A stretch of 64,000 nt of DNA. Origin: Dendrobates tinctorius. Lineage: Eukaryota. The position numbers and the translations under genes are program-made. Positions 10,043-35,769 of the stretch are shown here, in pieces; the first letter of the stretch is position 1; each line of letters opens with the position of its first letter. The notes below the pieces were generated by a model, which saw only the letters and a list, made by a program, of their open reading frames with translations, searched no databases and was not told the DNA's origin. The stretch spans positions 7,502,001 to 7,566,000 of the forward strand of contig NW_027361772.1 in assembly GCF_039654945.1 (NCBI RefSeq), written 5' to 3'.

Positions 10043-10174
10043 AAACTACACGATATGTGAGTTTACATGTGGGTATTCGTATTGTACTTTTTCATTTAAA
10101 ATTTTATGTACAAATTTAAATTTGAACCTTGATTTTCCAAAAATACACATATGTATTTTTTTAAGACGTGTTTC

Positions 10175-10180
10175 TTTAAT
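10175..10180 (-). terminator. Probable polyadenylation signal (ATTAAA) of il1b copy A after an AU-rich 3'UTR
   Basis: ATTAAA on the minus strand, conserved in copy B (about 28293-28298), close to where the paralogous 3'UTR similarity ends. Confidence 0.5.
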
Positions 10181-10712
10181 ATATCATTCTATATATTAAC
10201 ATTGTAAAGTTATCTTACTGTACAGTGCATTTTCATTTATGTTGTTTCTATTAATGCCTCCTGAAATAGCATAAAAACAAATTTTTTTCATAAAAATAAT
10301 AATTTACAAGTTATAGACAAAATACAAAACGGTAGGAAATTAAAAACTATTACGTAATATAAAACAATAATATTAAATATAGCTTTACACAACATATGAA
10401 CTCTTCATGGAGCTACTGATCTCTAACTGAGAAATTAAACTTTATGAAAGTATTGGGTATTACAACAGATTCTGTTGTTATTTCTAAGAACACTTTGTAC
10501 ATAAGAGTCAAGAGTACGGTTTTTCTCTATGAGCGAGACACTAAGGTCGGGTTTATGTAAAATTTTCATTCAAACGCTCATGATCTTCAGGACAATGTTG
10601 GGTGAAATTTACAAATGTCTCAAAATTGTGGCCAGAAGTGCTGGTATATACAGAGTGAAGGAATTAATTACAATATGTGCACGGTACATATACACAGTGG
10701 TTGGATCGCAAA

Positions 10713-13700
10713 CTATAAATTTGGATTCATTATGAAATCTTGCAGGAAGGTTTGATTGTTCTCTGGCATTAATTGCACCGGCTGCCGCTCTTGCTGAGAT
10801 GTGCTGATATAGTAGCCCGGGAAGGCGGCGGATTCAAAGGAGTTGTACCTAGTGCTGCTCGCTTTCTTGTAGAAGATGAAGGGTAACAAGTCATCGTCCT
10901 GTTTTTGTTTAATGTCGTCCACTTCCTAAAGGAAAGACACAAAAGAGAAATTTAGGAAATTCCTGGAATAAAGACATTCACCAAATATCTAAAAAAAAAT
11001 GTTATTGATGGGATCCATAATTCATATAACGAGACAGGAAGCGTAAAGCCCGCCATACACATCAGATGGTTCTGCCGATCATCCGTCCAAGGGATCGCTT
11101 GTTCACTTAAGAGCTCCTGTGTTCTCTATGAGTGCCGCCACCAGATATGAGTGGTAGAGACTTATCTCCAGGAGATACCACCAGATATGAGTGGTAGAGG
11201 CTTATCTCCAGGAGATACCACCAGATATGAGTGGTAGAGACTTATCCCAGGAGAACAAAAGGATCGGCAGTTCAGATTCAGACGTGCAGGATCCTTAGCT
11301 TCCCCGGCAATCAATTGTCTAACACGACTGTACATATTAGAGTGTTGCCCAAACCTATTGCTATTGACAGAATAGGCTATGTGTATGGAGAGGCTTAACA
11401 CCTTTGGCATTCTTTCTCATCAATCTTAGACCAACGCAGACATAGACAAACACCCAACCTGAGAAGAGTCAGACCTCCAGTCTATACTAAGTGGGGAATT
11501 TATCAAGACTGGCATTTTGGATGCCAGTCTTGAACCTAAAGCCTGCTGGAGTAAGATGCCAAATTTATTAAGAGGTACATTTTTGGGCTGCCTATGCACC
11601 ATACAATAAAATCTTGGCCAATCCTGGTCTACTGTTGATTTCAGCTACACTGTACGCTAATTTATCACATCCATTAAGGTAGTCGTGCGGAGAGATGTCA
11701 TGATACCTTTGTGAACAAGGTTCAGGGCTAGCGGAAAAGAGCAAGAAGCCACCAAAGAGCAAGTGTGGCAAATTTTGCAACCTTGGACATAATTTTTTGC
11801 TTCCTAGGTGTCCAATTTTTGACTTCAGAATATCTGATACATATTTTAATAGAGTTATTCCCAACAACAAATGTGATCACCTATCCATAGGATGGGTGAT
11901 ACTGTATTGATCATTGTGGGTCTGACCACTAGGACCTTCACCAGTTTTAAGAACAGAGCTCTGAAATGCTCCATTATAATGGAGCTATGACTGGATTTTC
12001 CCATAGACAATGAATGGAGGGATGAACTGACCTTTAGGCTTAGGACGGGATCTGTCGTCCCCTCTTCAGGAGTGCAGCACAAATAATGTTTGCGTCCCGC
12101 AATACCCAACGTGACTGGACGCTTCTCTATATCAGGTTTTGCTGAAAAGTAGGTGCCCACATTTATTTTAGCTGCAAGAGAAGCCAAAGTGTTAATATCA
12201 CGCAATATTTTAGGAGCTAAGGTCTTGTGAGCTACAGTTAATTAATTCTATATTCTAAAAAGAATGTAAGTAAAGCCTTACCTTCTTGCTGAATGTTCTG
12301 CCCTTGTAAAAACAAGGCCAAAATGCGGGCATTGCCTTGAAATTCTTGCAGAGTTAAGCATTTCTGTTTTTGATCACGAATAACGTGCACTGTCGTCTTA
12401 TTGTACAGAAATTGAGTGCTGACTGACTCTTGCGTTTCGGCTGAATTGCAAATGATGTCTTCTGTTATAAAAAAAAAAACAATTAATATTTTTTTTTCAT
12501 TTATCAGTAACTCTCAAAAGGTTATATAGACGACATCTCTCTCTGATAAGAGTTACAACTTGGTAGTGGAGAAAATGCAATATATAAGGTAATTTTTGAA
12601 TAATTGTGAATGATCTTACCATGCACAAGGATGTGATTCAACAGGTCATCATCATTGAAATAGCTCAACGCATCAATTCCTTTTATTCCTTTCAGCTTTT
12701 CCACCACTACCACAAGCATTACGACTTTCTTGAAGCAGCTCATTGGTTTTTCGGGCTTTCTTATCTCGGGCTTTATTTTAGGAAGATAAGTTGACCAACA
12801 TTCCTCGTGGTGTTTCCATTGTAGATGCTTCTTATTGGTCTGTAGAGCAAAAAAAATTACAGGTTTGTTATTGGAATGGTCCCTAAAGATCCGCTGTCTT
12901 ATTATCACACTCGTAGATGCACTTTAAGCTCTTGTACGTTCGCCACCAGCAGAATGAAAAATTTATGATGATAAATGCATAAATATCGTCTATCAAAGAG
13001 AGCATAGATGATATTATGGGATGTAGCTATACATTCATTTATCTCACAGAAATGTGCATGAACATATGCGTATTGCAATGGGGGATAATTTTCAGACCTT
13101 AGCGCATGAGAAAAGTGGAGCCGTGGTCGGTAGCAACCGATCAGATTGCGGATTTTATTTTCCAAAGGGAAATTATTATATAAGATCTCCAATGTGATTA
13201 ATTGCATTAGCTAACTGCTCCATTTTTTCCACACACTAGTTTTGATATATTTTTACTAATATCATTATACAACAAACGTGGCTTCATAAGCTTTAATACA
13301 TCAAGAGGTTGGCCGCACCCGACACCTCCACCCATCAGCTGTTACTGGTGACCGGATGTTTTCAAATGCAACCAAAACATAGCACCGCTGTCAAAACTAC
13401 AGTAGCCGTGGCTGGGTACTGCAGGTACACCCCAGGTTTAAGAATTAAAGAAGTTGTCCACTACTTATTTATTGATGACCCTTTTTTTTAGGATAGGCTA
13501 TCAACATCTGATTGGTGGGTATGCGACATCTGGCACCTCTGCTGGTCAACCGTTACAGATGGCCGAAAGTTCTCGAATGCTGCAGGAACACAGCAGCTCT
13601 GTCAAAAACTATAGTGACCACAGCTGTATACTCCAGCTCCACCCCCCTATACTTCTGAAGAAGGTCAGGATCTGCCGTACCTGGCCACAGCCTGTATAGA

Positions 13701-14461
13701 AGTCACACAGCTGCTATGTTCGGGCAACATCCTAGAACTTCTGTCTGGGGCCGGTAGCAGCTGATTGGCGAAAGTGCAGGACGTCGCACTCCTACCGATC
13801 AGATATTGATAGCCTTTCCTAAAAATAGGCCATCAATAAATAACTAGTGGCCAAACCATTAAGTCATACAAAATTGCTGCAAAAATACAAAATTTTCAGA
13901 ATCGACTTTTCGTTTCAGACACTTTTTAATGCGAAAAAATAATTATTTAACTAAAATGTATAAATCAAATGTCAATTACCTTCACTTTGATGGACAATTC
14001 ATCAGTGTAAAAGTCTTCCACATGCTCACTGCAAGGAGAAGAAATGGCATTCAAGACATGATGAAATAAAACACTGCGACGTAAGACCTAATTATTCTGT
14101 AGCCCAAAGCCTCAAAAATCCTTTAGTACTTAGCTAATATATATATATGTCTATGTAACATATATGGTACATGTAACATATTTTACATTTTTTCATCCTG
14201 TACAAATGATGGACTTTGTATTTTTTTTTATAATTTTTTAGGTTTCTATTCTTTTTATTTATTTTTTTTAATTATGTAAAGCATGTGTCTTATGTTACAT
14301 CACGGTGATATTCTCTCCTATAGTTATTACGGCAGCTCACTGAGCGCTCTTCATAGCCCAGTGCATATCCTAGTTCAAGCCCCGACCTTCTTTAGCGGGA
14401 TGGATGTAGATTATTACCTGTACTCCATTGAAATGTCATTATATTCTGGAATTTCTGCCAT
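10713..14461 (-). CDS. il1b: Interleukin-1 beta, copy A (281 aa). Coding exons 14461-14418, 14028-13980, 12839-12620, 12461-12282, 12171-12032, 10925-10713; non-coding exon 1 about 14643-14574
   Basis: Manual splicing with canonical GT-AG junctions gives an 846-nt open frame: MAEIPEYNDISMEYS/EHVEDFYTDELSIKVK/TNKKHLQW..FKKVVMLVVVVEKLK..FNDDDLL../..IRDQKQKCLTL..ALFLQGQNIQQE/AKINVGTY..PVTLGIAG..YLCC../EVDD..LLPFIFYKK..FESAAFPGYYISTS (IL-1 signature). The 7-exon layout with ATG in exon 2 matches vertebrate IL1B. Confidence 0.95.
11140..11252. repeat. 40-bp tandem repeat x3 in il1b copy A intron 6
   Basis: CCAGATATGAGTGGTAGAGACTTATCTCCAGGAGATACCA repeated; copy B has a single unit (about 29369-29400). 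Confidence 0.85.
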
Positions 14462-14668
14462 TATGTCTGTAGAGATAAATATACAACATAAATATATAGG
14501 GAATAGATCCAGACCGACACAAATATGTCTAGGTGACACATAAAACACGCAATAAAGGAAAATGATAAAATACCTTAAAAAGAAAAGCTGTAGAAAATAA
14601 GAAGTCCTGGAGACGTCCTGATCCCTGTGTGCTCGCAGCTACTGATCTGTCTGCAGACGGGCGGCTGC

Positions 14669-14825
14669 TTTTATAGACAGGCGACTGCTCAGGATCTTAC
14701 ACAATACCGGGGTTTTTCCCGACTTACTCTTTTTTTTTTTTGTGAGCGTGCTGTTCATTCTTTTCACATTTATAAAGCTGGATTTCACATGTACAAAGTA
14801 TTTAATTTCACCAGTGGGGTTTCCT
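14669..14825 (-). promoter_or_regulatory. il1b copy A proximal promoter: TATA (14669-14675), C/EBP (14696-14704), NF-kB-like sites (14709-14720, about 14815-14825)
   Basis: Minus strand TATAAAA about 100 nt upstream of the exon 1 donor; TTGTGTAAG fits the NF-IL6 consensus TKNNGNAAK; GGGGTTTTTCCC and GGGGTTTCC are kB-like. All are conserved in copy B. Confidence 0.8.
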
Positions 14826-15051
14826 TACTTTTGGGATCATGCCCTTCACAATAAATCAGGCACAGGTAGAATAACAGAGACTGATACCTAGCATGCAATT
14901 TATTTATTATGTGAATTTCCCATTTAAGTTGGAGCATTTTGCTGACATGATCGACCCTATCTTGAAATTTAAAGGGGTTTTTCATTGGTTAAAATAATTT
15001 TTAAAAGGATGATAGCAATATTTATTTAAAAAAATATGAGAATGTAAAAAA

Positions 15052-15892
15052 TCTACTATATAATCGTCTAATTCTTTCTGTCTGTCTGTAATGGAAATCC
15101 CGCGTCGCTGATTGGTTGAGCCCAGCCGAATTGGCGCGGCATTCGAACGACGCACGCCACTGCTACCGTTGGGAGATCTGCGGCGCTAGCCGCTGATCTC
15201 CCGATCATTGCCACGGGTCATCTCCTGCCGCACGGAGGTCAGCGGCGACGCAGCCGGTAGATGACCGGTGCAGCGCTCAATGTGCGGATGGTACCCAGGG
15301 TCCAGAGGAGAGGATACTCTCCTCCAGGCCCTGGGTACCATAAACCTGTAAAAAATAGAATTAAAATAAAAAATAGTGATATACTCACCTTCCGATGGCC
15401 CCGGACTCTTTCCTGCCTCTCACCACGTGCCCGGCAACTTCCGGTCCCAGTAATGCTTTGCGCAAAAGACCGCTGATGACGTAGCGCTCTCGCTGGAGTG
15501 ACATCATCTCCGGTCCTTCGCGCTAAGCATTACTGGGACCTTAAGATGCCGGGAGCGTGGAGAGGAGATCAGGGGCCGTCGAAAGGTGAGAATAAAAAAA
15601 AGTTTATTCTCACCTTCCGACAGCCCCCGATCTCCTCTCCACGCTCCCGGCATCTTCCAGTCCCATTAATGCTTAGCGCGAAGGACCGGAGATGACGTCA
15701 CTCTCGCGAGAGCGCGACGTCATCAGTGGTCTTTCGCGCAAAGCATTACTGGGACCGGAAGATGCCGGGCATGTGGTGAGAGGAGGGAAAGAGTCCGGTG
15801 GCTGTCAGAAGGTGAGTATAACCTTTTTTTTTTTTTATTTTTTTTGCCATATTCTAGAATACCCAATGTGTTAGAATCGGGCCACCATCTAG
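15052..15892 (+). mobile_element. Non-autonomous Helitron
   Basis: A|TCTACTATATAA 5' end, subterminal hairpin-like CCCAAT..ATCGGG, then CTAG|T 3' end; AT target with no TSD; CpG-rich internal repeats. Confidence 0.75.
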
Positions 15893-15926
<34 letters not shown>

Positions 15927-17533
15927 CAACAAAATATAAAATATCATCCTTGAGCCCCAGGAGCTCCTGTTCCGACACCCGTTATTTGCTGGTCTTTACT
16001 TCCAAGTTTCAACTCAAAACACTTGTTAAAATTATTTGCAGCATTTTTCCAGTGCATTTTTTTCTGCTTAAAAAAAGCTTGCATTTTACAGTCCCAGGAA
16101 AGTGAATGAGGTCTCTGAAGTCTTATGCACGTGCTGCTGTTTTTTGTTTTTTGTTACTTGCATATTTTAATCATCAATGCGGTTTTTTTTAAATATGCAC
16201 CATGTCGATTTTATCGTTTTTTTAAAACATTTTTCACCCATTCAAATGAATATCTAAAAAACCCAAGTAAAAATGTGTTCAAAATGCAAGTAAAAATGTA
16301 TGAAAAGTCCATAAAATACAAGCACATCGAGTACCACATTCATTCTGTATTTTTGCTGCACAAATATCGGCTGCAAAAGCTCAACATGTGAACTTACCCT
16401 ATAAGCATACCCTAAAAGTGGCCAGAAATCTACTTAAAGAAGCTCTCCTCATCCTCCTCCTATCAAAGTTTTTATCCTCTTAAAATATTGCAGTCATCAT
16501 ATTATATGGCACTGTGTAGTTACAATTGCTCATTTTATCTTTCTACCTAGTTAATTGTTTTCTCAAAGAAAACACTTTGAGTAATGTATCAGGGAGGCAC
16601 ATTTTGGATAAAACCATTTTTGACCTGTTACAATGAGTTCATGATTTATTTTTAATGTCCTTGTGAGCTTCAATATTTAAGAAGTAAAGACTATGAGAGA
16701 GAAAATATAGAAGCACCACAAGCTGGGAGTTTTAGTAGGGTGTGATGCAGTCCCATTGGTCAAAGCAGGTGTAGGGAAGGTGACCTGACGGACGGACGGA
16801 CTAGTCAGAGTGAAGAAAGATAGGTTTGCACAGTGTAGGTAGGAGTCAGTGATTACAGTGGGGAAACAACTAGGAAAGTGTAGTGGACGTGCAGTACCTT
16901 GGGATGACCATTAGATGGCAGGGTGGAGTGTGAGCAAAGGACTTTACAGCAGCTTAGGGCTTTAGAAACCGTTGGTCATGGGGGGCGTGGTGACAGTTAG
17001 AGTGACAGTTTCAAGGAACCGGGGGAGTTATAAATACTGAGGGAGGGTTCCAGAAAGTTCCAGTCCCCAGGGGGAGCTCAAGTGACAGGAGGACTACGAC
17101 AGTCTGTGCACTCTGAGGAGAATCCAGACCAGGGGGACTGAGGAGAGAGGACGTCAGGGGGGTGGTCCTGACAGGAAAGGACCGCAGTTGAGACGAGGTA
17201 CTGGGTGTAAGACACCATATGTGACACGACGACTGAGCAGTAGAAGCGCTGTTGGTTAATGGGCCTAAGGCGGCCACAGTGACGGAACTGTCAGGAGCGT
17301 CGACAGTAAAGGAGGGGACGGTGTGTGCAGACACGTCTCCAGTGTACGGTGTGAGAAGCGGCTCTGGAAACGGAGGGCCGCGAGGTGTGCCGTCAGTCGG
17401 ACGGCAAGTGAAGAAATAAACTTGGACCTGTTGCACCCAGAATCTGCCTCCATCTCGTCTCTGTTGTCATCTCTGCGCGGTATAAAAGTAGGACCACCCC
17501 CCCAGCTCGGCACCCCACCACCGACACTACATT

Positions 17534-17551
17534 TGGCGTAGTCGGCAGGAT
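17534..17551 (+). promoter_or_regulatory. Primer binding site for tRNA-Ser
   Basis: TGGCGTAGTCGGCAGGAT is complementary to the vertebrate tRNA-Ser 3' end (..ATCCTGCCGACTACGCCA) and starts 2 nt after the LTR. Confidence 0.9.
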
Positions 17552-17742
17552 CGCCGCCGCTAATACGCTATCTTCTGCGGCAGGCCTGCAACTGAAGGAC
17601 TGAGGAAAACTTGGACTACTCTATTTCGGATTATAAACACCTGTGGACTAAAAATTACTGACCTGTGGATTACAAATTGGGACGCTGTGTCGGATCTGTG
17701 TTGCTTGCAGAGGATCCAAGGCAGTAGCTGATTCTGCCCAAG

Positions 17743-18870
17743 ATGGCGGTATTACTTCAGCGCAGAGGAGAGGTCCGGGTGTTTGCAGTTGTTCAGAATG
17801 GACTGGGACCCCCTCCAACGTACCCCAAAAGGAAGCAATATATGCCCGGAGACCGACGTTTCCATATATTGGACCCTGGCAGATGGATGGAAAGGTCTGC
17901 CAACGCCCCACCCAGCAGGAGGAGTGGCACAGAAGAAAAACTTGGCTGCGGCTGTCTGATGCCATTCGAGTGCTGCCCAACGGACGGTATGAGATGCTGC
18001 GGGTGTCGGGGCATCGGCCGCCTAGAGTGGCAATGGCGGCGAGAGATGGAGCTGCATCAGAAGTCATCTTCAGATTTACGGGCAGGCAGCGGGATGCTGA
18101 GCCGGGGAGCGGAGCCTGAGGGGAGTCAGCGAGAACGGCTGCCACCAATACCAGCAGAGGACTTCTCAGCGGAGCCCCCGAGTCCGGAGGGAAGGCCCGC
18201 AGGACAGTGGAGCAAGGAACGGAGGCTGCGGGGGAAACTGCGTGATGATGAAACGGAGGCCGCAGCGCCGGGGAAGGTGAGAGTACCCCCGGCCCTACCA
18301 GTGCCTCCGCAAGCGGCCCCCACCATTCTGCTGCAGCACGCGGCCCCCTGCGCACCGGAAGGCCTAGTTACCACGGGCCCCGTGGTGTATGCAGAGCTGA
18401 GCGAGGTCCCCGCTCATGTCCCCGAACTACCCCGCCCGGAGTCACCAGTGCAGAGCTCACCCAAAGAAGATGCTGCTGCGCTTTCCCTGCTAATAGCAGC
18501 TGCATTGTTGAAATCGGCCGTTACTCCGACTCCGTTGGAAGTAGTGGATGCGGCCTGTCCTGAGGCCGCGGTTATGCCGCTGCTGGAGTCGGCTGCGACC
18601 GATTTAGCGGGCCCTGTGATTCCAGCCCCCGAGGACCCGGTTCTCCCCATTTGCCACCTGACCCCAGCGGCTGCTGGGCCGCAGAAATCTTCGGCCGTTT
18701 CTGTCTTGCGGTCTTTTTCAGCGGAGTCCCGCCCACCGGACTCCAGGGCCCGTGCTGTTCCCTCCGTGTGGGAAGCGGAGGTGATCAGGAAGAAAAAGGC
18801 CCGGGAGCAGGAAGTGTGGAACCTGCTCCACACTCAAGGAGAGGCCGTCATGGAAAAGAAGAGGACTTGA
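17743..18870 (+). CDS. 375-aa orphan ORF inside the LTR element (Cys-cluster N-terminal part, Pro/Ala/Glu-rich middle, basic helical end)
   Basis: Longest ORF of the internal region, in the gag position and sense to the LTRs. No recognisable gag or pol motif. Confidence 0.45.
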   Translation: MAVLLQRRGEVRVFAVVQNGLGPPPTYPKRKQYMPGDRRFHILDPGRWMERSANAPPSRRSGTEEKLGCGCLMPFECCPTDGMRCCGCRGIGRLEWQWRREMELHQKSSSDLRAGSGMLSRGAEPEGSQRERLPPIPAEDFSAEPPSPEGRPAGQWSKERRLRGKLRDDETEAAAPGKVRVPPALPVPPQAAPTILLQHAAPCAPEGLVTTGPVVYAELSEVPAHVPELPRPESPVQSSPKEDAAALSLLIAAALLKSAVTPTPLEVVDAACPEAAVMPLLESAATDLAGPVIPAPEDPVLPICHLTPAAAGPQKSSAVSVLRSFSAESRPPDSRARAVPSVWEAEVIRKKKAREQEVWNLLHTQGEAVMEKKRT

Positions 18871-20680
18871 ATGGACACCCTCAGTATCCCCGTGGAGCCC
18901 TCACCTCTATCCATTGAGAGTGGTATAGACTGTCAGGAGTTCGATGCACCGTTGTGCAGATTATAAGGACAGTTGCATTTAGAAAAAAGTTTTGTTGTTG
19001 TTTAACTGATGCAACTATTTTCTCTCTCTCTTTCTTTCTTCTTTCTATGTTCTTTATATACGAAAATATGTTTACCTGACAGAACGGGGATACGGAAAAG
19101 TGGAGGAGTGTCCAGGTCCAAGGAAGGGGGGGAGGAAGAAAGAGGAAATGCAATGTTATGTTATATTTTGGTTTTAAAAGCAAGAGAAAATGAAAAAAAA
19201 AAAATTAAAAAAAATGGGGTACTTGTGCTATTATAAAGTTGTATGATGTATAATATGCAAAGTAAAATGCAACAGGTCCGGGTTAAGGGAAGGTCTGCGG
19301 GACCAAAGGAAAGTGTGAGATCCGGTAGGGATCTAAGAGTTGAGGTCTGGGAGACCGGGACGCCGACCATGACATGTAATTGAAAGAAGGAAAATGAATG
19401 GGAAGATGTGAGAAAGACAGCCGTCCTAGGTCAGGTCCCCGACGCCACGGACACCCCTGAAGAAGGAAAGGCGGGCGCCGGCAATGATCTGGTAGGTGAG
19501 TGGCCTCGATCATGGCGTACCGGATAGTGAAAGGTAACAGTAGGGGAGAGTAGGGGAAAGATACACGCCGTAGAGAGAATACGGGTGTACCTTGCCCAAT
19601 TTGAAAGACGTTGTCATGTGGCGTGCGCGCTGGTGAGTAGCAGTAGGCTGCTCAGAGCATAGTGCTCCCAGTATAGTTCGGCCCCCGCAGATAGTGGGTT
19701 TGGCTCAACTTCTGGTCCGACAACAGAATGTAGGTGTAGATTCAGAACGACGAAGGCAGGGATGACGATTGTCGAGGACGACAATGGACAAAGGAAGGAG
19801 GAGTGTAGGGAAGGTGACCTGACGGACGGACGGACTAGTCAGAGTGAAGAAAGATAGGTTTGCACAGTGTAGGTAGGAGTCAGTGATTACAGTGGGGAAA
19901 CAACTAGGAAAGTGTAGTGGACGTGCAGTACCTTGGGATGACCATTAGATGGCAGGGTGGAGTGTGAGCAAAGGACTTTACAGCAGCTTAGGGCTTTAGA
20001 AACCGTTGGTCATGGGGGGCGTGGTGACAGTTAGAGTGACAGTTTCAAGGAACCGGGGGAGTTATAAATACTGAGGGAGGGTTCCAGAAAGTTCCAGTCC
20101 CCAGGGGGAGCTCAAGTGACAGGAGGACTACGACAGTCTGTGCACTCTGAGGAGAATCCAGACCAGGGGGACTGAGGAGAGAGGACGTCAGGGGGGTGGT
20201 CCTGACAGGAAAGGACCGCAGTTGAGACGAGGTACTGGGTGTAAGACACCATATGTGACACGACGACTGAGCAGTAGAAGCGCTGTTGGTTAATGGGCCT
20301 AAGGCGGCCACAGTGACGGAACTGTCAGGAGCGTCGACAGTAAAGGAGGGGACGGTGTGTGCAGACACGTCTCCAGTGTACGGTGTGAGAAGCGGCTCTG
20401 GAAACGGAGGGCCGCGAGGTGTGCCGTCAGTCGGACGGCAAGTGAAGAAATAAACTTGGACCTGTTGCACCCAGAATCTGCCTCCATCTCGTCTCTGTTG
20501 TCATCTCTGCGCGGTATAAAAGTAGGACCACCCCCCCAGCTCGGCACCCCACCACCGACACTACACAGGGACAGTACCACACCCTACTAAAACTTCAAAC
20601 TTGTGGTCCTTGCATAAATTCTCTCTTGTGGTCCTTCCTATGTATTGAAGCTCACATGGACAGAAAAGATATATCACAAA

Positions 20681-20790
20681 CAGGGCTGTGGAGTCAGTAA
20701 GCCAAACCTCCGACTCCTCAATTTCCATGACTCCGGCTCCACCAAAATGGGCTCCGACTCCACGTCTCCAACTCAGACTCCAGAGCCCTA
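20681..20790. mobile_element. 110-bp hAT MITE
   Basis: CAGGGCTGTGGAGTC...GACTCCAGAGCCCTA TIRs; perfect 8-bp TSD ATCACAAA. Confidence 0.9.
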
Positions 20791-21681: not shown

Positions 21682-21988
21682 TAGTGATGAGCGAGTATAC
21701 TCGTTACTCAAGATTTCCACACATGCTCAGGTGTTCTCTGATTTTGGCGTGCTCGGAGATTTAGTTTGTGTCGCCGCAGCTGCATCATTTGCGGCTGCTA
21801 GACAGCCTGAATACATGTGGAGATTGCCTGTTTGTTAGGAAATACCCACATGTATTCAGGCTGTCTAGCAGCCGCAAATGATGCAGCTGCGGCGACACAA
21901 ACTAAATCTCCAAGCACGCCCAAAATACTCGGAGAACACCCGAGCGTGCTTGGAAATCTCGAGTAACGAGCATACTCGCTCATCACTA
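21682..21988. mobile_element. Palindromic hAT MITE
   Basis: TAGTGATGAGCGAG...CTCGCTCATCACTA with near-complete internal self-complementarity; TSD GTGATGAT/GTGGTGAT. Confidence 0.9.
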
Positions 21989-22914: not shown

Positions 22915-24270
22915 GGCTGTGGGGCCATCATACTATATATATGGGGGGGAAACTGCGGCCATCCTACTATATATATGTGGGGGTATATGTGGGGGAAACT
23001 GCGGCCATCCTACTATATATATGTGGGGGTGTATGTGGGGGAAACTGCGCCCATCCTACTATATATGTGGGGCAAACTGCGGCCATCCTACTATATGTGG
23101 GGGAAACTGCGGCCATCCTACTGTATATATGTGGGGGTATATGTGGGGGGAAACTGCGGCCATTCTACTATATATATGTGGGGGAAACTGCGGCCATCCT
23201 ACTATATATGTGGGGGGAACTGCGGCCATCCTACTGTATATATGGGGGGGGGAAACTGCTGCCATCCTACTATATATATGTGGGGGAATCTGTGGCCATC
23301 CTACTATATATGGGGGGGAAACTGCAACCATCCTACTATATATATGGGGGGGAAACTGCGGCCATCCTACTGTATATATGGGGGGAAACTGCGGCCATCC
23401 TACTATATATATGTGGGGGAAACTGGGCCATCCTACTATATATGTGGGGGAAACTGCGGCCATCCTACTATATATGCAGGGGAAACTGCGGCCATCCTAC
23501 TATATATGGGGGGGAAACTGCGGCCATCCTACTATATATGCAGGGGAAACTGCGGCCATCCTACTATATATGGGGGGAAACTGCAGCCATCCTACTATAT
23601 ATGTGGGGGAAACTGTGGCCATCCTACTATATATGGGGGGGAACTGTGGCCATCCTACTATATATATGTGGGGGAAACTGCGGCCATCCTACTGTATATA
23701 TGGGGGGGGGAACTGAGGCCATCCTACTGTATATATGGGGGGGAAACTGCGGCCATCCTACTGTATATATGGGGGGGAAACTGCGGCCATCCTACTGTAT
23801 ATATGGGGGGGAAACTGCGGCCATCCTACTATATATGTGGGGGAAACTGCGGCCATCCTACTATATATATGGGGGGGAAACTGCGGCCATCCTGCTATAT
23901 ATGGGGGGGGAAACTGCGGCCATCCTACTATATATATATGGGGGGAAACTGCGGCCATCCTACTATATATATGTGGGGGAAACTGCTGCCATCCTACTAT
24001 ATATATGGGGGGGGGAAACTGCGGTCATCCTACTATATATATGTGAGGGAAACTGCGGCCATCCTACTGTATATATGGGTTGGAAACTGCGGCCATCCTA
24101 CTGTGTATATGGGGGGTGAAACTGCGGCCATCCTACTGTGTATATGGGGGGAAACTGCGGCCATCCTACTGTATATATGGGGGGGAAACTGCAGCAATCC
24201 TACTGTATATATGGGGGGAACTGCAGCCATCCTACTATCCTATATATGGGGGCTGGGGACTATATATATG
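22915..24270. repeat. About 30-33-bp minisatellite (GGGGGAAACTGCGGCCATCCTACTATATATAT); degenerate continuation to about 25440
   Basis: Tandem periodicity; accounts for the spurious long ORFs here. Confidence 0.95.
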
Positions 24271-25086: not shown

Positions 25087-25240
25087 CAGTTGAAACCAGA
25101 AGTTCCCATGCACTATATAAAAAGACACATATGACCTAAAACGGGAAAGGTTTATTCTGATTTCATGTCAGATAGAGAAAAACATGCAGATTTGTGTTTT
25201 TATACAGTATATAGTGGATGTAAACTTCTGGTTTCAACTG
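25087..25240. mobile_element. Tc1/mariner MITE
   Basis: TA|CAGTTGAAACCAGAAGT...ACTTCTGGTTTCAACTG|TA. Confidence 0.85.
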
Positions 25241-25554
25241 TATATACATAGGGGGCAGTGGGGATTTCATACTATTTACAGGGAGCAGTGGGGACCTTCA
25301 TACTATATTTATGGGCAATGGGAACATCTTATTTTATATAGGGGCTATGTAGCCATTTTACCATATATAGGGAGATCCAGGGTCCTCAATGTATAATAAA
25401 GGGCTTTGGGGACCATCGTATTGTGTTTTGTGTTATGTAGGGCCTTCATTCTATATTTTCAGAGGTTTGTGGGCAATCAGAGGACATTATTTGTTATAAA
25501 TGGGGACATTATTAGTTAGTGATAGGGGCACCCAGGTTCCATTATTTTTTCTTA

Positions 25555-27030
25555 AGGCTCGGTTCTCCTCCCATATCTCTGTAGTAAGCACCGTTCTGCT
25601 CCTATACTTCTATAGTAAGCTCGGTTATGCTCCCATATCTCTGTAGCAAGCTCCGTTCTGCTCCCATATGTCTGTAGTAAGCTCCGTTTTGCTCCTATAT
25701 TTCTGTAGTAAGCTCAGTTCTGCTCCCATATCTCTGTAGTAGGCTTGGATCTGTTCCCATATCTCTGTAGTAAGCTTGGTTCTGCTCCCATATCTCTGCA
25801 GTAAGCTCTGTTCTGCTCCAATATCTCTGTAGTAAGCTCGGTTCTGCTCCCATATCTCTGGAGTAAGCTCTGTTCTGCTCCCATATCTCTATAGTAAGCT
25901 TGGTTCTGCTCCCATATCTCTATAGTAAGCTTGGTTCTGCTCCAAATCTCTGTAGGTAGCTAGGTTCTGCTCCCTTATCTTTGTAGTAAGCTTGGTTCTG
26001 CTCCCATACCACGGTAGTAATCTCGGTTCTGCTCTCATATCTCAGTAATAAGCTCGGTTTTGCACCCATATATCTGTAGTATGCTCCTTTCTGCTCCCAT
26101 ATCTCTGGAGTATTCTCCATTCTGATCTATATCTCCGCAGTAAGCTTGGTTCTGCTCCCATATCTTTGTTGTAAGCTCAGTTCTGCTCCCATAGCTCTAT
26201 AGTAAGCACTGTTCTACTCCCATATCTCTGTAGTAAGCTCCGTTCTACTCCCATATCTCTGTAGTAAGCTCAGTTCTGCTCCTATATCTCTGTAGTAAGC
26301 TCGGTTCTGCTGCCATATCTTTGTAGTAAGCTCTGTTCTGCTCCCATATCTCTGTAGTAAGCTCGGTTCTGCTCCCATATCTCTGTAGTAAGCTCAATTC
26401 TGCTGCCATATCTCTGTAGTAAGCTTGGTTCTACTCCCATATGTCTGTAGTAAGCTCGGTTCTGCTGCCATATCTCTGTAGTAAGCTCTTTTCTGCTTCC
26501 ATATCTCTGTAGTAAGCTTGGTTCTGCTCCCATATCTCTGTAGCAAGCTCTGTTCTGCTCCCATATCTCTGTAGTAAGCTCGGTTCTGCTCCCATATCTC
26601 TGTAGTAAGCTCGGTTCTGCTTCCATATCTCTATAGTAAGCTTGGTTCTGCTCCCATATCTCTGTAGAAAGCTCGGTTCTGCTCCCATATCTCTGTAGTA
26701 AGCTTGGTTCTGCTCCCGTATCTCTGTAGTAAGCTCGGTTTTACTCCCATATCTCTGTAGTAAGCTCGGTTCTGCTCCCATATCTCTGTAGTAAGCTTGG
26801 ATCTGCTCCCATATCTCTGTAGTAAGCTTGATTATGCTCCCATATCTCTGTAGTAAGCTTGGTTCTGCTCCCATATCTCTGTAGTAAGCTCCAGTCTGTT
26901 TCCTTATCTACTTAACAATCTTGGTTCCGGTCTCGTGTCTATGTAGTCAGCTTGCTTCTGTTACAGTATCTATGTAGGCAGTAAGCTTGGTTCTGCTTCC
27001 ATATATATGAAGCTAGCTCCGTTCTGTTCC
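25555..27030. repeat. 31-bp minisatellite (CATATCTCTGTAGTAAGCTCGGTTCTGCTCC)
   Basis: More than 40 tandem units. Confidence 0.95.
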
Positions 27031-27474
27031 CATAATTATGTACCACCCTGTTTTTAAAGCCTGTTATCTCTGCTTCTTTAATGCAGCGGCCAAAGATAAG
27101 CAGGGCAAAAGCACCGCAACTGGAGGGCCACTGCCTTGTGATTGCCCCCCAGGCTGAAAAGTGCCAGCCAGCCCCTGCCCCAGTGTATGTGCTGCTGTGC
27201 TCCTGGGCAGCTCGTTACTTGAAAACGGAGCCTTCTATCAGTTTAGCATGGACCCTGGAAGTCTCTGTGCTATAGGGACTGATACCCTGCCTCATGCAGC
27301 TTGTCTTGGCAGGGAGAGCACATTCCTCTCCTATGCCTGCGGATCTCCAACATGTTACCTCTTCCTAAATGGTCTCTGCTCAGAACATTGCAACCTCTCA
27401 GAAGCACCTCCTCCCCCCTGAGGGATTGTGCACACTTTCTGGTTCAGGCAAAACTGCACAATCTTCCAGAGTAA

Positions 27475-27841
27475 GGCTGTGTGCACATGCTGCGGAATCT
27501 GCTGCGGATTGATCAGCGCGGATTTTCAAAATCTGCAGATAAATCCACAGGTCTTTTGACCTGCGGATTAGCCTGCGGTTTTGCCCTGCGGTTTTACCAT
27601 CTCCACAATGGAGGAGATGGTAAACCGCTGCGGAATCCGCAGAAAGAATTGACATGCAATTCTTTCTGCGGTTTAGAAACCGCAGCAAAATCCGCGCGGA
27701 CAATTCAGCAGCATCTGCACTGTGGTTTCCTTTTCCCATAGGGAATCATGGTACTGTACACTGCAGCAGAAACTGCTGCGGATCCGCAGGGCCAAATCCG
27801 CTGCGGATCCGCAGCAGAATCCGCAGCGTGTGCACACAGCC
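27475..27841. mobile_element. PIF/Harbinger MITE (CCGCAG family)
   Basis: TIR GGCTGTGTGCACA..TGTGCACACAGCC with TAA TSD; relative at 34555-34881 (TTA TSD). Confidence 0.85.
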
Positions 27842-28733
27842 TAAGGGATCAGGTAAAATGTGTGGATGCAGTTTTCCCATCCCTCACTATAGCTGGCAGT
27901 ACATATATAAGTATATTACACATGCAGGCACGAGTGCCACACATACAGCTAGGTATTTAGTCTAAATTTTGGACTTATTTCTTGCCAATGTTTTTCCTTA
28001 TCTAGTTTATTTTGTCATTACAATGGAGGTTGGGGGTTTCTTTTTTTGCCTTTTACATCAGTAACTTTGGTCCAATTATAGATCATAATTACTATCTATA
28101 TTTTCTGATATTTCTCTTTTAGTCTGATCTTTCCCTACTACTGTGCATTTATCTTTTGCATATATTCATAATTAAGTTTATTTATGTTTTATACTTGTTT
28201 GCCCCTATTTTTTCTTGCTTTCTATCAAATATATCACTTACATTGTTGTCATCATCTCAATTACAAACTCATTGTTTTTTTAAGTGTGTTTCTTTAATAT
28301 AACAATTCCATATATTAACACTGTACAGTATATTTTAATTAATGTTTTTATTAATGCATCCTGAAATAGTATAAAAGCAGCATTTTTTTTCATAAAATAA
28401 TAAATTACAAATTATAGACAAAATACAAAACGGAAAAAAATATAAACTTTTATGTAATATAAAATAATAATATTAAATATAGCTTTACACAATATATTAA
28501 CTCTTCATGGAGCTACTGATCTCTTCTCTCACTGAGAAATGAAACTTTATGAAAGTGTTTATTAATACAACAGATTCTGTTATTTCTAAGGACGCTTTGT
28601 ACGGTTTTTCTCTATGAGCGAGACACTAAGGTGAAATTTATGTAAAATTTTCATTCAGTCGTTCATTATTTTCAGGACGATGTTGGGGGAAATTTTACAA
28701 ATGTCTCAAAATTGTGGCCAGAAGTGTTGGTAT

Positions 28734-28872
28734 GGGCAGGGTCCTCTCTCCTCCTGTACCAGTTATGACTTGTATTGTTCAACATTATTGTACTTGTTTT
28801 TATGTATACCCCTTTCTACATGTAAAGCGCCATGGAATAAATGGCGCTATAACAATAAATAATAATAATAAT
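28734..28872 (+). mobile_element. L2 LINE 3' tail inserted antisense into the il1b copy B 3'UTR
   Basis: Absent from copy A at the matching site (about 10646). Matches the L2 3' end at 50782-50930, with stem-loop AGCGCCAT..ATGGCGCT and an (AAT)n tail. Confidence 0.85.
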
Positions 28873-28937
28873 ATACAGATTGAAAGAATTAATTACAATA
28901 TGTACACGGTACATATACACAATGGTTGGATCGCAAA

Positions 28938-31900
28938 CTATAAATTTGGATTCATTATGAAATCTTGCAGGAAGGTTTGATTGTTCTCCGGGATTAATTG
29001 CACCGGCTGCCGCTCTTGCTGAGATGTGCTGATATAGTAGCCCGGGAAGGCGGCGGATTCAAAGGAGTTGTACCTAGTGCTGCTCGCTTTCTTGTAGAAG
29101 ATGAAGGGTAACAAGTCATCGCTCTGTTTTTGTTTAATGTCGGCCACTTCCTAAAGGAAAGACACAAAAGAGAAATTTAGGAAACTCCAGGAATAAAGAC
29201 ATTCACCAAATATCTAAAAAGAAATGTAATTGAAGGGATCCCTAATTCATATAGCGAGACAGGAAGTGTAAAGTCCGCCATACACATCACATGGTTCGGC
29301 CGATCATCCGTCCACACAAGGGATCGCTTGTTCGGTTAAGAGCTCCTGTGTTCTCTGAGTCCCGCCACCAGACATGATTGTTGGAGACTTATCTCCAGGA
29401 GAACAAAAGGATCGCCAGATTGAATTCAGACGTGCCGGATCCTTAACTTTCCCGGCAATCAATTGTCTAAGACTACTGTGCATATTAGAGTGTTGACCAA
29501 AACCATTGTTATCGACAGAATAGGCTATGTGTATGGGGAGGCTCAACACCTTTGACATTTTTTTCTCCCCAATCTAATAACAATGTAGACATCACCAAAC
29601 ACCCAGCCCAAGAAGGTCAAAGCTCAAATCTAAACTAAGTTGAAATTTTATGGATTAATATTTTGCATGCTAGTCTTGAACCTAAAGCCTGTCGGAGTAA
29701 GGGTATGTTTCCATGTTCCATTTAGGCAGCACTTTGGACGCAGCTCCGTCCAAAGCGTTGCCGGCTTTTGTATGCCCGGTGATTCCGCATGTATTAATTG
29801 CACCACGCGGAATCACCGCATCCAATACATAGATGGTGATATTTAACTTGCGGAGACTGAGCGTCTCCGCACGATAAATAGACATGCTGCTGTCTATAAG
29901 GTTGCACCGCATGTCCGGTTACGCAGGTCTGCCACCTGCGTCTTTGAATGCATAGTGGAGATGGGATTTCATAAAGTCCCCTCCACTATGCTGTAACATC
30001 TGGCCGCTGCGGATTGGAAGCTGCAGCTGTACGCAGCATCCAATCCGCAGCAAATACTGAACACGGAAACATGCCCTAAGATCTGCCAAATTTGATAAGA
30101 AGTACATTTTTTGGGCTGCCCATGTGCCGTAAGATAAAATCTTTGACAATCCCAATTTGGCATTGATTTCAGCTGCAATGTACACTAATTTATGGCATTC
30201 ATTATACTAAAGTTGTCTTGCGGTGATAGGTCATGATGCCTTTTTGAACATGTTTCACTACTGGGGCCAAAGAGCAAAAAGCCACCATAGGTCAAGTGTG
30301 ACAACTTTTGCATTTTGGACATCATTTTTGTCCCCAAGTGTCCAGCTTGTGGCTCCAGAATATCTGTTACTACATTTACTAAAGCATTTTTCCCAACAAT
30401 GAATGTTATCACATATATATGGATAAGGTAATGAACTGCTGATCATTGTGAGACTGAGACCTCCACTAATCCCAAGAACAGAGCTCTGAAATGCTCCATT
30501 ATAATGAAGCCATGACTGGATTTTCCCATAGACAATGAATGGAGGGATGTACTGACCTTTAGGCTTAGGACGGGATCTGTCGTACCCTCTTCAGGAGTGC
30601 AGCACAAATAAAGTTGGCGTCCCGCAATACCCAATGTGACTGGACGCTTCTCTAGATCAGGTTTTGCTGTAAAGTAGGTGCCCACATTTATTTTTGCTGC
30701 AAGAGAAGCCAAAGTGTTAAAATCACGCAATATTTTAGACGCAAATATTTTGTGAAATACATTATTTTTTAGAATACAAAATTAATATCTGTAAGTAAAG
30801 CCTTACCTTCTTGCTGAATATTCTGCCCTTGTAAAAACAAGGCCAAAAGACGGGCATTGCCTTGGAATTCTTGCAGAGTTAAGCATTTCTGTCTTTGGTC
30901 ACGAATAACGTGCACTGTCGTCTTATTGTACAGAAATTGAGTGCTGACTGCATTTTGCGTTTCAACTGAACTGCAAGTGATGTCTTCTGTTATAAGAAAA
31001 AATGAAACAAGTATTTAATTTTATCAGTAATTCATGCACCGATATATCGACGACATCTCTCTCTGATAAGAGTTACAACTTGGTAGTGGAGAAAATGCAA
31101 CATATCAAAATGATTGTGAACTAAATACATAGCAATTGTTACTATCATAAGTATGCATTTATCTTATATGTTAACAACCTAGAATTTAAAAAAAAATACT
31201 TTTACATAGGGTGCAATGAAATCAGTTGGCAATACGTCATTATTGTTTTACCTTAATAAGACCCTTATTTATTAAAAGGGACGTGTCATTTCCCATAAAT
31301 GTGTAACTTTTTTTAACTGGAATAAATTCTGCTGTTCTCCTGAATCTGGCGATGTTCCTCTTTTGTTTCTGTGCCTCCCCATTCCTGAGATATGGCCCTC
31401 TCTTCCCTGTAGGTAAATTTAGTCTTGTTAGCTAACTGGGCGTGGTCTCCCACAGAGAAGAGTTCCTGACCACACCCACTCTGATAACAAGGCTCGATTT
31501 ACATACAAGGAAGAAGGGGCTGTATCTCAGGAATGAAGCAGCGCAGGAGCAAAGGGAAAACAACGCCGGATTCAGGGGAAAAGCGACATTTACATAAAGT
31601 AAAAAAATGACATATTATCGGTAAGGTAATTTTTGAATAATTGTGAATGATCTTACCATGCACAAGGATGTGATTCAACAGGTCATCATCATTGAAAAAG
31701 CTCAACTTATCAATTCCTTTTATTCCCTTCAGCTTTTCCACCACTACCACAAGCATTACGACTTTCTTGAAGCAGCTCATTGGTTTTTCGGGCTTTCTTA
31801 TCTCAGGCTTTATTTGAGGAAGATAAGTTGACCAACATTCCTCATGGTGTTTCCATTGTAGATGCTTCTTATTGGTCTGGAGAGAAAAAAATTACAGGTT

Positions 31901-33066
31901 TGTTATTGGAATGGTCCTTAAAGATCTGTTGTCCGCATAGGAACTGTTTTAGTTCTTGAACATTCGACACCGGCAAAATGAAAAATTTATTATGATCAAT
32001 GCAAAAATATCGTCTGTGGAAGAGAGCATAGATGATATTATTGGATGTATCTGTACATTTATTAATTTTAATAAATTGTCCATTAACATATTGCATTCTT
32101 CTCTAGGATATTTTTCAGAACCTAGTGCATGAGAAAAGTGTAGCGGTTGTCCGTAGCGGCCAATCAAATTGCCAATTTTATTTTTTCAAGGGGAAATTAA
32201 AATATGAGAGATCCAAGCTGATTCCCTATGCACTAGTGTTGATACATTTTTATTAATGGGTTATCAGAACGCAGGAACACTTTCAAAAGTACAATGGCTG
32301 TGGCCGATTACGGCAGATCCTTCCCGTATGGGTGTGGGTGTGGATCTGTAGTACCCCAACGCGGCCACTATGGAGGTAATGGAGCTGCTGTGTTTCCTCA
32401 GTCTCCGAAAACTTCCTACCGGACGTCACACCCCCATCGATCAGAGATCGATATCCTATTCTAAGGATGGTCTATCAATAAATAAATGTAGTGGCCAAAC
32501 CCTTAAATCGTCTAAAGTTTTACAAAATTGCTGCAACAATGCAAAAAATTTTTATTTTAGTATCAACTTTTCATTTCAAACACTTTTTACTCAATAAAAA
32601 ATAATCCTCAGTAAACTAAAATATAAAATCAAATGTCCATTACCTTCGCTTTGATGGATACTTCATCAGTGTAAAAGTCTTCCACATGCTCACTGCAAGG
32701 AAAAGGCAATAAAACATTGTGATGTAAGACCTGATTATTCTGTAGCCCGAAGCCTCCAAAATTCTTTAGAACTTAACTAATATTTCTCTGTGTAACATGT
32801 ATATTAGATATAACATCTTTTACATCTTTTCACCCTGTACAAATGACGGATTTTCTGTTTTTTTTTATAATTTTTTTTTTATTCTTTTTTTAAATTATGT
32901 AAAGCATGTGTGTTATGTTACATCACGGTGATATTCTCTCCTATAGTTATTACGGCAGCACACTGAGCGCTCTGCATAGCCCTGTGCATATCCTAATACA
33001 AGCCCCGACCTTCTTTTATTACCTGTACTCCATTGAAATGTCATTATATTCTGGGACTTCTGCCAT
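28938..33066 (-). CDS. il1b: Interleukin-1 beta, copy B (281 aa). Coding exons 33066-33023, 32692-32644, 31876-31657, 30986-30807, 30696-30557, 29150-28938; non-coding exon 1 ends at 33177
   Basis: Same exon sizes as copy A (44, 49, 220, 180, 140, 213 nt), GT-AG junctions, open frame MAEVPEYNDISMEYS...FESAAFPGYYISTS...MNPNL*; 20 aa differ from copy A. Confidence 0.95.
29701..30076. mobile_element. PIF/Harbinger MITE in il1b copy B intron 6
   Basis: TIR GGGTATGTTTCC..GGAAACATGCCC with TAA TSD; empty site in copy A (GGAGTAAGATGCC, about 11548-11560). Confidence 0.9.
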
Positions 33067-33271
33067 TATGTCTGTAGAGATAAATATACAACATAAATAT
33101 ATAGGGAATAGATCCAGACCGACACAAATATGTCTAGGTGACACATAAAACGCGCAATAAGGAAAAATGATAATACCTTAAAAAGAAAAGCTGTAGAAAA
33201 TAAGAAGTCCTGGAGACGTCCTGATTCCTGTGTGCTCGTAGCTACTGATCTGCCTGCAGACGGGCGGCTGC

Positions 33272-33437
33272 TTTTATAGACAGGCGACTGCTCAGGATCT
33301 TACACAATACCGGGGTTTTTCCCGGCTTCCTTTTTTTCTTTTTTGTCATTGTGCTATTTATTCTTCTCCCTTGTATTTAGAGAACTGGATTTTCAAGATA
33401 CCACATGTACATGTAGATTTCACCAGTGGGGTTTCCT
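33272..33437 (-). promoter_or_regulatory. il1b copy B proximal promoter: TATA (33272-33278), C/EBP (33299-33307), NF-kB-like sites (33312-33323, about 33427-33436), ETS/PU.1-like site (33325-33335)
   Basis: Motifs paralogous to copy A; minus strand AAAAAGGAAG carries a GGAA core. Confidence 0.8.
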
Positions 33438-33451
33438 TAGTTTCGGACTAA

Positions 33452-34266
33452 GGGTACCGTTACACTTAGGCTGGTTTCACACTTGCGTTTTTTTGCGCTG
33501 CTTTTTAGCGCAAAAAAGCAGGCGTTTTTCCCGCTATACTTTAACATATGTGCGCATACATATGCGCACGTACACGTTTGTATGCGCCTGCGTTTTTTTG
33601 CAGTGTGCGCTCGGGCGCACAAAATGCTTCCGGTTGCATTTTTTGTGCGTCCGACTTGCCCCAAAAAAACGCATGCGCACGCAATGCGTTTTTTTTTTTT
33701 TTTTTACAGCAAAACACCCATTAAAGTCTATGGGTGCACGTATGGGTGCGCGTATGCGCAAAAAAAGCATGCATTTTTTTTTAAGAAAGGCACCAAAACC
33801 CGCAAAAAATGCACACAAACGCATGATGCGTTTTTTTCATGCGTTTGTGTGTGCAAAAAGCACGCAGCAAAAAAACGCAAGTGTGAAAGTAGCCTTAGCG
33901 ATGCACCAGCGATCCCGACAACGATATGACGCGGTCAGGATCGCTGGTGCACCGCTAAGTGGTCGCTAGTGAGCTGCCACACAGGCAGATCTCACCAGCG
34001 ACATAGCAGCGGTCGGGGGTCGCTACTTACCTGTCAGACGAGACGATCCTGACGTCCTCCCGCCCGCGTCCACGCGTCGCCACAGCAGGAAGCTGACGAC
34101 GAGAAATGGTCCAGGACGTTCTCGCGCGATCAGCGATAACCAGCGGGGGAGCGGTCGGAGGTAAGTATCAGACACAGCGATATCGCTAGCAATATCGCTG
34201 CTGCGTCACAAAACCAGTGACGTTATAGAGATATTGCTAGCGATATCGCTATGTGTAACGGGCCCT
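33452..34266. mobile_element. PIF/Harbinger MITE containing a nested second MITE (33469-33894), upstream of the copy B promoter
   Basis: Outer TIR GGGTACCGTTACAC/GTGTAACGGGCCCT with TAA TSD; inner GGCTGGTTTCACACTTGCG/CGCAAGTGTGAAAGTAGCC with TTA TSD; copy A site is empty (GGGATCATGCCCTTCAC). Confidence 0.9.
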
Positions 34267-35769
34267 TAATGCCCTTCACAATAAAGCAGGCACAGGTAGA
34301 ATAATAGAGACCGATTCCCTTCACAATAAACCCTCACCCTAATTGACCTCCAGCAACTCCTAATCAGACGCGTCCCCGATCTCTGATGGTATTTACTTCC
34401 TAGCGTCATCTCAAAAGACTATGGGGCTTGTTCACGCACTGATTTTTTGCAACTGTTCTTTCAGTGTTTTTTTTCAGTGTTTTCTTTTTTAGTGGTTTTT
34501 TTTCAGTATTTTTTTTTCAGTGTGTTTTTGTACTTAAGAAAATGCAGTGTTTTAGGCTATGTGCACACGTTGCAGATTCTGCTGCAGATCCGCAGCAGCT
34601 TCTGCTGCGTTGTACAGTACCATTTAAGTCTATGGAAAATGAAAAACGCAGTGCACACGTTGCGGATTTTTCAGCGGTTTTAAATCCACAGCATGTCACT
34701 TCTTCATGCAGACTCCGCAGTGGTTTGACACCTGCTCCATTACAGGTGTCAAACCGCAGGGGAAAACCGCAGGCTAATCTGCACTAAATCCGCAGGTAAA
34801 ACGCAGGTCATTTGACCTGCGGATTTAGCCAAATCTGCGAGGAATAATCCGCAGTAGAATCCGCAACGTGTGCACACACCCTTACAGTACCAGGAAAAAT
34901 GACTGAGATTTCTGAAACCTCGTGCACATTATGCTTTTTTCTTCTTACGTTGTGTATTTTACCATGCGTCTTTTCAGATCTGCAGCATGTCGATTCTTTC
35001 AGCGTTTTTCACCCATTCAAATGAATTGCTAAAAAAATGCGCAATAAAAAAGCATAAAAAATGGAATTGAAAAATGTGTGCATTATACTCTGCGTTTTTC
35101 CTGCCAAGAGACGTGTTTTTTGAATGCAGAAATATCCACTGCAAAGACTCAACGTCTGCACATACCCAATGAGTGGCCAGAAATTTACTTAAAGGCTTTT
35201 CCCAATTGTTCTTTACTCACCCTTCCCTGGTCCAGTGACTGGTTTCCACTGCTGCTCCTGATACTGTTATTGTGTGCAGTACTGACATGAGGCTGACGGC
35301 GCTGCAGCCAATCGCTGAGCTCAGCAGCTCTAAGGGTTTGTGCCTGTGCGCTGAGCTCGGTGATTGTCTGCAGCGCTATCAACGTGATATTATTGTGTAA
35401 TCTAAATGACGGAGGAATAATAGGACTAAGGCCTCATTCAGACTTCCGATGAATACGTACTTGTTCTATCACCATAGTACATGTATGTACATAGTATTGG
35501 TATATATGTATATTCCAAAGTGTTTTTGTAGCCTCAGAAGACTTTCACCGGCACTTCACAGAAACTTTCCTACAATGTATGGGATAACTCTTGTAGTGTT
35601 TGTGTCATATGCGCGCCTGAGGAAAGAAAGGAAGAGCAGTGAGTGAGTAACCAGATTCCAGGCAGGGAGGTATTTTGCCCCAGGTAATAGAGACGCAATC
35701 CTCCTTAGTGCAGCTGTCAGTGAGGACAAAGCTTTATATTGGGCACTAAATATGGAGCACTGTATTATA

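Follow-up and report, generated by a model that had tools for sequence, protein, structure and literature searches.

A tandem pair of intact interleukin-1 beta genes in Dendrobates tinctorius that probably predates the Dendrobates/Ranitomeya split

Interleukin-1 beta (IL-1beta) acts as the master pro-inflammatory cytokine, and studies of frog immunity, including those on chytrid and ranavirus, use it as a standard read-out. In a 64,000-nucleotide stretch of the Dendrobates tinctorius genome (RefSeq assembly GCF_039654945.1, contig NW_027361772.1, positions 7,502,001 to 7,566,000 of the forward strand; hereafter the window, numbered from its first nucleotide), an earlier note had recognized two intact copies of il1b, the gene for this cytokine. 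The locus raises the question of whether these are two genes or one gene assembled twice and, if two, how old the duplication is and whether both copies have been retained. We conclude that they are very probably two genuine head-to-tail il1b genes, which were duplicated before the Dendrobates/Ranitomeya split and have both been kept by purifying selection. The pair itself is an ordinary tandem cytokine duplicate of a known kind, already present in RefSeq; the frequent occurrence of multi-copy il1b in frogs is absent from the literature searched.

The duplicated unit was delimited by self-BLAST of the window and MAFFT alignment of units A and B, and exon borders were first read off the minus strand and then placed by homology. 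Self-comparison identified a single duplicated unit, in which positions 10217-14831 (A) correspond to 28320-33443 (B) with offsets of 18.1-19.0 kb; the homology continues to a common ATTAAA poly(A) signal, located near 10160 (A) and 28283 (B). Copy A (10160-14654) and copy B (28283-33257) are arranged head-to-tail, and both lie on the minus strand, which specifies the strand for the two complete genes that the earlier note had placed on the same strand about 18.5 kb apart. Each copy consists of seven exons, of which the first is non-coding, with the same sizes in A and B (81/49/49/220/180/140/213 nt) and with GT..AG borders at all introns. Both open reading frames (ORFs) are 846 nt long and encode 281 amino acids, and they differ from each other at 37 nucleotides and 20 amino acids; the gene models therefore reproduce the identical exon sizes, intact splice sites and 20 of 281 differing residues reported before. 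A TATAAAA box upstream of each copy agrees with the claim of separate promoters. The interval between the two genes (13.5 kb) contains no N. Searching the window by tblastn with model A revealed no third il1 copy and no exons of other IL-1 family members beyond A and B. The features of the two units are as follows.

10160-14831, minus strand: unit A, comprising the entire il1b transcription unit and about 180 bp of proximal promoter (self-BLAST and MAFFT versus unit B)
14669-14675, minus strand: TATA box of copy A (TATAAAA), read from the sequence and identical in B
14574-14654, minus strand: exon 1 of copy A, non-coding, 5' end approximate (GT donor; joint 14466/14574 in a spliced contig of a relative)
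14418-14466, minus strand: exon 2 of copy A, with the ATG at 14461 (joint 14028/14418 in runs X19, X1 and X5)
13980-14028, minus strand: exon 3 of copy A (model and spliced contigs)
12620-12839, minus strand: exon 4 of copy A, propeptide (model, Pfam and spliced contigs)
12282-12461, minus strand: exon 5 of copy A, linker and start of the mature domain (carries 13 of the 37 nucleotide differences)
12032-12171, minus strand: exon 6 of copy A (model and spliced contigs)
10713-10925, minus strand: exon 7 of copy A, coding part and stop codon (IL1 domain, Pfam E 1e-11)
10156-10712, minus strand: 3' untranslated region (3'UTR) of copy A (ATTAAA at 10175-10180; RNA contig end at 10156)
28283-33443, minus strand: unit B (self-BLAST and MAFFT versus unit A)
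33272-33278, minus strand: TATA box of copy B, read from the sequence
33177-33257, minus strand: exon 1 of copy B, non-coding (placed by homology)
33023-33071, minus strand: exon 2 of copy B, with the ATG (the joined model equals RefSeq XP_073444790.1)
32644-32692, minus strand: exon 3 of copy B (homology model)
31657-31876, minus strand: exon 4 of copy B (homology model)
30807-30986, minus strand: exon 5 of copy B (homology model)
30557-30696, minus strand: exon 6 of copy B (homology model)
28938-29150, minus strand: exon 7 of copy B, coding part and stop codon (homology model)

A search with exon 7 led to frog IL-1beta proteins, and a word search with one of these yielded 30 frog relatives. 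The joined models are residue-for-residue identical to RefSeq XP_073444789.1 (A) and XP_073444790.1/791.1/792.1 (B), thus the pair is already annotated, on one record and with the name "interleukin-1 beta-like [Dendrobates tinctorius]" for both entries. The RefSeq pair shows no sequence difference from A and B, and its name in the database is automatic only. The database proteins P0036 and P0037 likewise equal models A and B. The IL1 domain (PF00340) was matched by exon 7 alone with an E-value of 1.1e-11 and is on record for both full proteins, as is the IL1_propep domain (PF02394), which exon 4 alone matches weakly (E 0.014). The best matches among solved structures are the IL-1beta proteins of chicken, mouse and human (E down to 8e-21, residues 121-277), and they place the start of the mature domain near residue 121. 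Residues 1-40, read directly from the models, are acidic or polar without a hydrophobic stretch, indicating a leaderless protein with no signal peptide. With regard to aspartate-directed (caspase-1) cleavage between the propeptide and the mature domain, the LVHED motif (102-106) and the I-R-D motif (133-135) are retained in both copies. Judging by these sequence features, each copy is a predicted 281-amino-acid leaderless IL-1beta precursor, in which an N-terminal propeptide is followed by a linker and by the beta-trefoil cytokine domain at the C-terminus. It has been argued that anamniote IL-1 cannot be assigned to IL1A or IL1B, and human caspase-1 was reported to leave Xenopus IL-1 uncleaved (PMC9382457).

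The divergence between the two units is distributed unevenly. Exons are 93-98% identical, and the nucleotide difference of the coding sequences is 0.044, versus a Kimura two-parameter (K2P) distance of 0.225 in introns 2-6, which are 81% identical at more than 30 nt from the exons. Each unit also possesses insertions or stretches of its own.

28734-28872, no strand assigned: B-only 139-bp insertion in the 3'UTR, similar to a short interspersed element (SINE) and ending in an A/T-rich tail (90% identical to a second copy at 50782-50923)
31106-31622, no strand assigned: B-only 517-bp insertion in intron 4 (alignment gap)
29703-30083, no strand assigned: B-only 381-bp insertion in intron 6 (alignment gap)
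13263-13656, minus strand: A-only 394-bp stretch in intron 3, part of a high-copy repeat (alignment gap)

The repetitive nature of the last stretch is seen in a DNA-like run of a relative, where depth reaches 1814 at 13384-13537. These private insertions of 139-517 bp and the intron K2P of 0.225 bear out the earlier argument that copy-specific transposable elements and divergent introns speak against a haplotype or assembly artefact. A separate difference was observed in intron 6, where a 40-bp unit occurs three times in A (11138-11254) and once in B (29365-29402); this stretch is replaced by varied sequence in DNA-like contigs of a relative, pointing to an unstable spot.

The age of the duplication can be approached through other frogs. 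In the protein tree, copy B groups with Ranitomeya imitator XP_069622856 and R. variabilis XP_077118795 (support 95/87), and copy A groups with R. imitator XP_069622858 and R. variabilis XP_077116936 (support 90/82); thus, the Ranitomeya copies are one-to-one orthologues of D. tinctorius A and B. A clade of the two D. tinctorius copies is disfavoured by the approximately unbiased (AU) test, with a log-likelihood difference of 19 and a p-value of 0.043. Five A/B differences (116 E/N, 136 K/R, 192 K/Q, 193 H/L and 214 D/A) are old, because they are shared by the respective Ranitomeya orthologues. The DNA-like contigs of a third species differ by about 5% from the introns of copy A, versus about 20% between A and B, which argues that the duplication is older than the Dendrobates/Ranitomeya split. 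The earlier idea of a lineage-specific duplication therefore stands as far as a true duplication is concerned and fails if taken as species-specific, as A and B have orthologues in two Ranitomeya species. The remaining A/B differences are specific to D. tinctorius, with about 10-11 assigned to A and 5-6 to B, and every outgroup protein is closer to B than to A. This excess of A-specific changes is suggestive of a rate asymmetry in the protein sequences, which is not significant by a rough count.

At least nine other frog species have annotations of two or three il1b-like genes on one chromosome, namely R. imitator, R. variabilis, Phyllobates terribilis, Anomaloglossus baeobatrachus, Leptodactylus fuscus, Dendropsophus ebraccatus, Pseudophryne corroboree, Hyperolius riggenbachi and Mixophyes fleayi. 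As in D. tinctorius, several proteins of 277-283 amino acids are found on one chromosome-sized record, and their accessions are often consecutive (e.g. the pairs in P. terribilis and A. baeobatrachus). Outside Dendrobates and Ranitomeya, the frog copies cluster by species, which reflects either several duplications that were independent of each other or gene conversion that homogenized an old array. A single such gene was found in this search in Bufo bufo, B. gargarizans and Rhinoderma, while Eleutherodactylus coqui has a single gene within the close il1b group plus a divergent il1b-like gene. The claim that il1b is usually single in tetrapods fits the literature, in which one IL1 gene is stated for amphibians (PMC9382457), but it does not fit these frog annotations; pig has a tandem IL1B1/IL1B2 pair. 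A literature search for descriptions of frog il1b duplicates found none.

A second and much more divergent lineage of il1b-like proteins, with about 45-50% identity to the main frog il1b, forms a well-supported clade of its own (P0052, P0053, P0003 and P0005). It is present in E. coqui, Hyla sarda and two further representatives, with no member in the window. By its sequence, this clade suggests an earlier duplication of il1 among hyloid frogs.

Both copies have been under purifying selection since the duplication. The Nei-Gojobori comparison of A and B gave a nonsynonymous rate (dN) of 0.035, a synonymous rate (dS) of 0.088 and a ratio (omega) of 0.40, with values of 0.44 in the pro-region and 0.35 in the mature domain; the dN/dS check suggested in the earlier note thus returned purifying selection. 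Among the 37 changes, 14 are synonymous against an expected share of 0.20 (binomial p 0.009). This synonymous excess, together with the intact orthologues of both copies in two species, indicates that both genes are maintained. The amino acid differences are divided between residues 1-120 (11) and 121-281 (9), and 5 of the 20 fall at residues 108-117, in the linker immediately before the mature domain. The pro/mature linker is poorly conserved across vertebrates (PMC9382457), so relaxed constraint may suffice to account for this cluster.

Transcription was assessed in public runs picked with copy A as bait, and the contigs of four runs were aligned to positions 10150-14750 at 85% likeness. Two D. 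tinctorius runs from two studies, X19 and X1, each provided one spliced contig (1394 or 1190 nt) that is 100% identical to copy A; its joints coincide exactly with five of the six introns of the model, and the RNA ends at 10156, about 20 nt beyond the ATTAAA signal. The joint of exons 1 and 2 was seen only in a contig of a related species (run X5), which confirms the removal of intron 1 (14466/14574). In the same run, two contigs align to exon 5, an A-like one with 6 differences and a depth of 171 and a second one with 15 differences and a depth of 64; the latter has the letters of B at 12295, 12324, 12340 and 12368 and codes for K136R. Therefore, the related species expresses both paralogues. 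No B-type contigs were found in the D. tinctorius runs X19 and X1, both of which had been picked with the copy A sequence, while RefSeq holds three transcript models for copy B. The proposal that both copies are functional is well supported by sequence, and transcription in D. tinctorius was demonstrated here for copy A only.

Several observations weigh against two il1b genes duplicated before the Dendrobates/Ranitomeya split and kept by selection. The AU p-value of 0.043 is marginal, and the A clade has a support of just 90/82. The dS between the copies is 2.5 times under the intron divergence, and gene conversion of exons may blur the dating. The copy A contig runs unbroken through stretches common to A and B, so B RNA was probably rare, and may have been absent, in the X19 and X1 samples, although contigs as such do not demonstrate absence. 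Finally, a divergence of A and B in regulation or processing is pure inference.

The alternative that best survives is an older neobatrachian tandem il1b array with within-species gene conversion, in which the protein tree would underestimate the age of the duplication; we regard it as possible and rather improbable. It would explain the species-clustered pairs or triples in Phyllobates, Anomaloglossus, Leptodactylus, Dendropsophus, Pseudophryne, Hyperolius and Mixophyes, as well as a dS of 0.088 well under the intron divergence of 0.225 and the drop in identity from 0.89 to 0.75 with distance from the exons. Two Phyllobates proteins also carry the appropriate residues: XP_073506985 has the derived K192/H193 and K136, as in the A group, and XP_073506986 has R136 and L193, as in the B group. 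However, intron 5, which separates exons 5 and 6 by just 110 bp, reaches an identity of only 81%, thus selection on exons fits better than long conversion tracts. In addition, the AU test on the whole protein rejects the placement of XP_073506985 in the A group (p 0.006), B. bufo, B. gargarizans, Rhinoderma and (within the close group) E. coqui each have a single such gene, and recurrent independent duplication accounts for the same tree. An extended form, in which an old neobatrachian array was repeatedly homogenized and split into differently regulated or processed copies as an anamniote parallel to IL1A/IL1B, is more speculative still, and we entertain it with corresponding reserve; if true, such an old, split array contradicts the published view of one IL1 gene in amphibians.

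It is unlikely that copy B is intact yet silent or dying in D. tinctorius, leaving A as the sole working il1b. In favor of this reading, the runs X19 and X1 gave A-type spliced contigs only, the 3'UTR of B carries the SINE-like insertion, and B is without the distal upstream DNA of A. On the other hand, the ORF and splice sites of B are intact, its TATA box and core promoter are identical to those of A, and its exon 1 and intron 1 are 96-97% identical to their A counterparts. B is also the slower-evolving copy, nearer than A to every outgroup protein; intact B orthologues have been kept in two Ranitomeya species, a B-like form is expressed in the related species, and the three RefSeq models for B, whose supporting evidence was not seen, are in line with its transcription. 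A false duplication, by two haplotypes or mis-assembly of a single il1b gene in tandem, is extremely improbable, as nothing positive favors it and it is opposed by an intron divergence of about 20% (K2P 0.225), far above allelic variation, the 139-517 bp insertions private to each copy, the continuous 13.5 kb without N between them, one orthologue per copy in each of two Ranitomeya species, and the expression of both A-like and B-like forms in a relative.

Returning to the preferred reading of two old and selectively maintained genes, the borders of the unit suggest how the copies may have come to differ. The A/B homology ends about 180 bp upstream of the TATA box, beyond which the DNA is unrelated; the region that begins at -64 and takes in exon 1, intron 1 and exon 2 shows 96-98% identity. 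A segment of about 4.7 kb would have been copied, with the upstream limit of the homology at one end, the poly(A) signal at the other and the whole transcription unit inside. The position of its upstream end explains why the core promoter, exon 1 and intron 1 of the two genes are nearly identical and lie next to different distal DNA. It can be speculated that the copies share proximal signals but answer to different distal enhancers, and that they were retained through divided or specialized expression. Different processing at the linker, where 5 of the 20 differences fall, might perhaps contribute, and so might altered surface residues (192-193 KH/QL and 214 D/A). NF-kB-like motifs were noticed in the common 180-bp promoter by eye only, and we make no claim on them.

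The window contains a number of other elements. Between the il1b genes, at about 16770-20565, there is a long terminal repeat (LTR) retroelement with 763-bp LTRs (16769-17531 and 19803-20565) that are 100% identical and have TG..CA ends. A 4-bp target duplication (CAGG) accompanies it, the 5' LTR is followed by a primer-binding-like site (TGGCG), and a purine tract precedes the 3' LTR; the 2.27-kb interior holds a 375-amino-acid ORF without a Pfam match, and the element is located inside an inverted repeat. By its sequence it looks like a very young, non-autonomous insertion. The intergenic region also contains two minisatellites, at 22938-24252 (34-bp units, about 37 copies) and 25557-27034 (31-bp units, about 48 copies), and a 42-bp array is found at 36044-36743. 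A long interspersed element of the CR1/L2 type (54461-58425, minus strand) has an intact 976-amino-acid endonuclease/reverse-transcriptase ORF, preceded by a 350-amino-acid ORF1 with a GDSL-esterase-like domain, and is possibly still active. A helix-turn-helix fragment of a Tc1/mariner (Sleeping Beauty-type) transposase lies at 38896-39246. Host genes were sought among the long ORFs of the window and rejected, since only transposon proteins were matched. The assembly gap of 149 N (48141-48289) is outside the il1b pair.

Should two or three il1b genes be present in many frogs, quantitative PCR primers and RNA-seq counts that assume one gene will mix paralogues, and the statement of a single IL1 gene for amphibians needs correction. 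The pair also provides a natural setting for testing whether a duplicated cytokine is retained by regulation or by processing at the pro/mature linker.

Among known systems, the IL1B1/IL1B2 pair of pig (PMC5777074) resembles the frog pair in being a lineage-specific tandem il1b duplication in a tetrapod, with both copies intact and seven exons. The second pig copy is distinguished by an alternate exon, is expressed specifically in the conceptus and gives a phenotype when knocked out (PMC5777074). By analogy, this pair would be the closest tetrapod precedent for the retention mode proposed for the frog genes, although differential regulation is only inferred in the frog and the two duplications are independent. 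The IL1A/IL1B genes of amniotes are similarly neighbouring IL-1 genes that arose by tandem duplication, and they have diverged in expression and proteolytic processing (PMC9382457). In contrast to the frog copies, which are 93% identical and both il1b-like, the amniote genes are ancient and very divergent.

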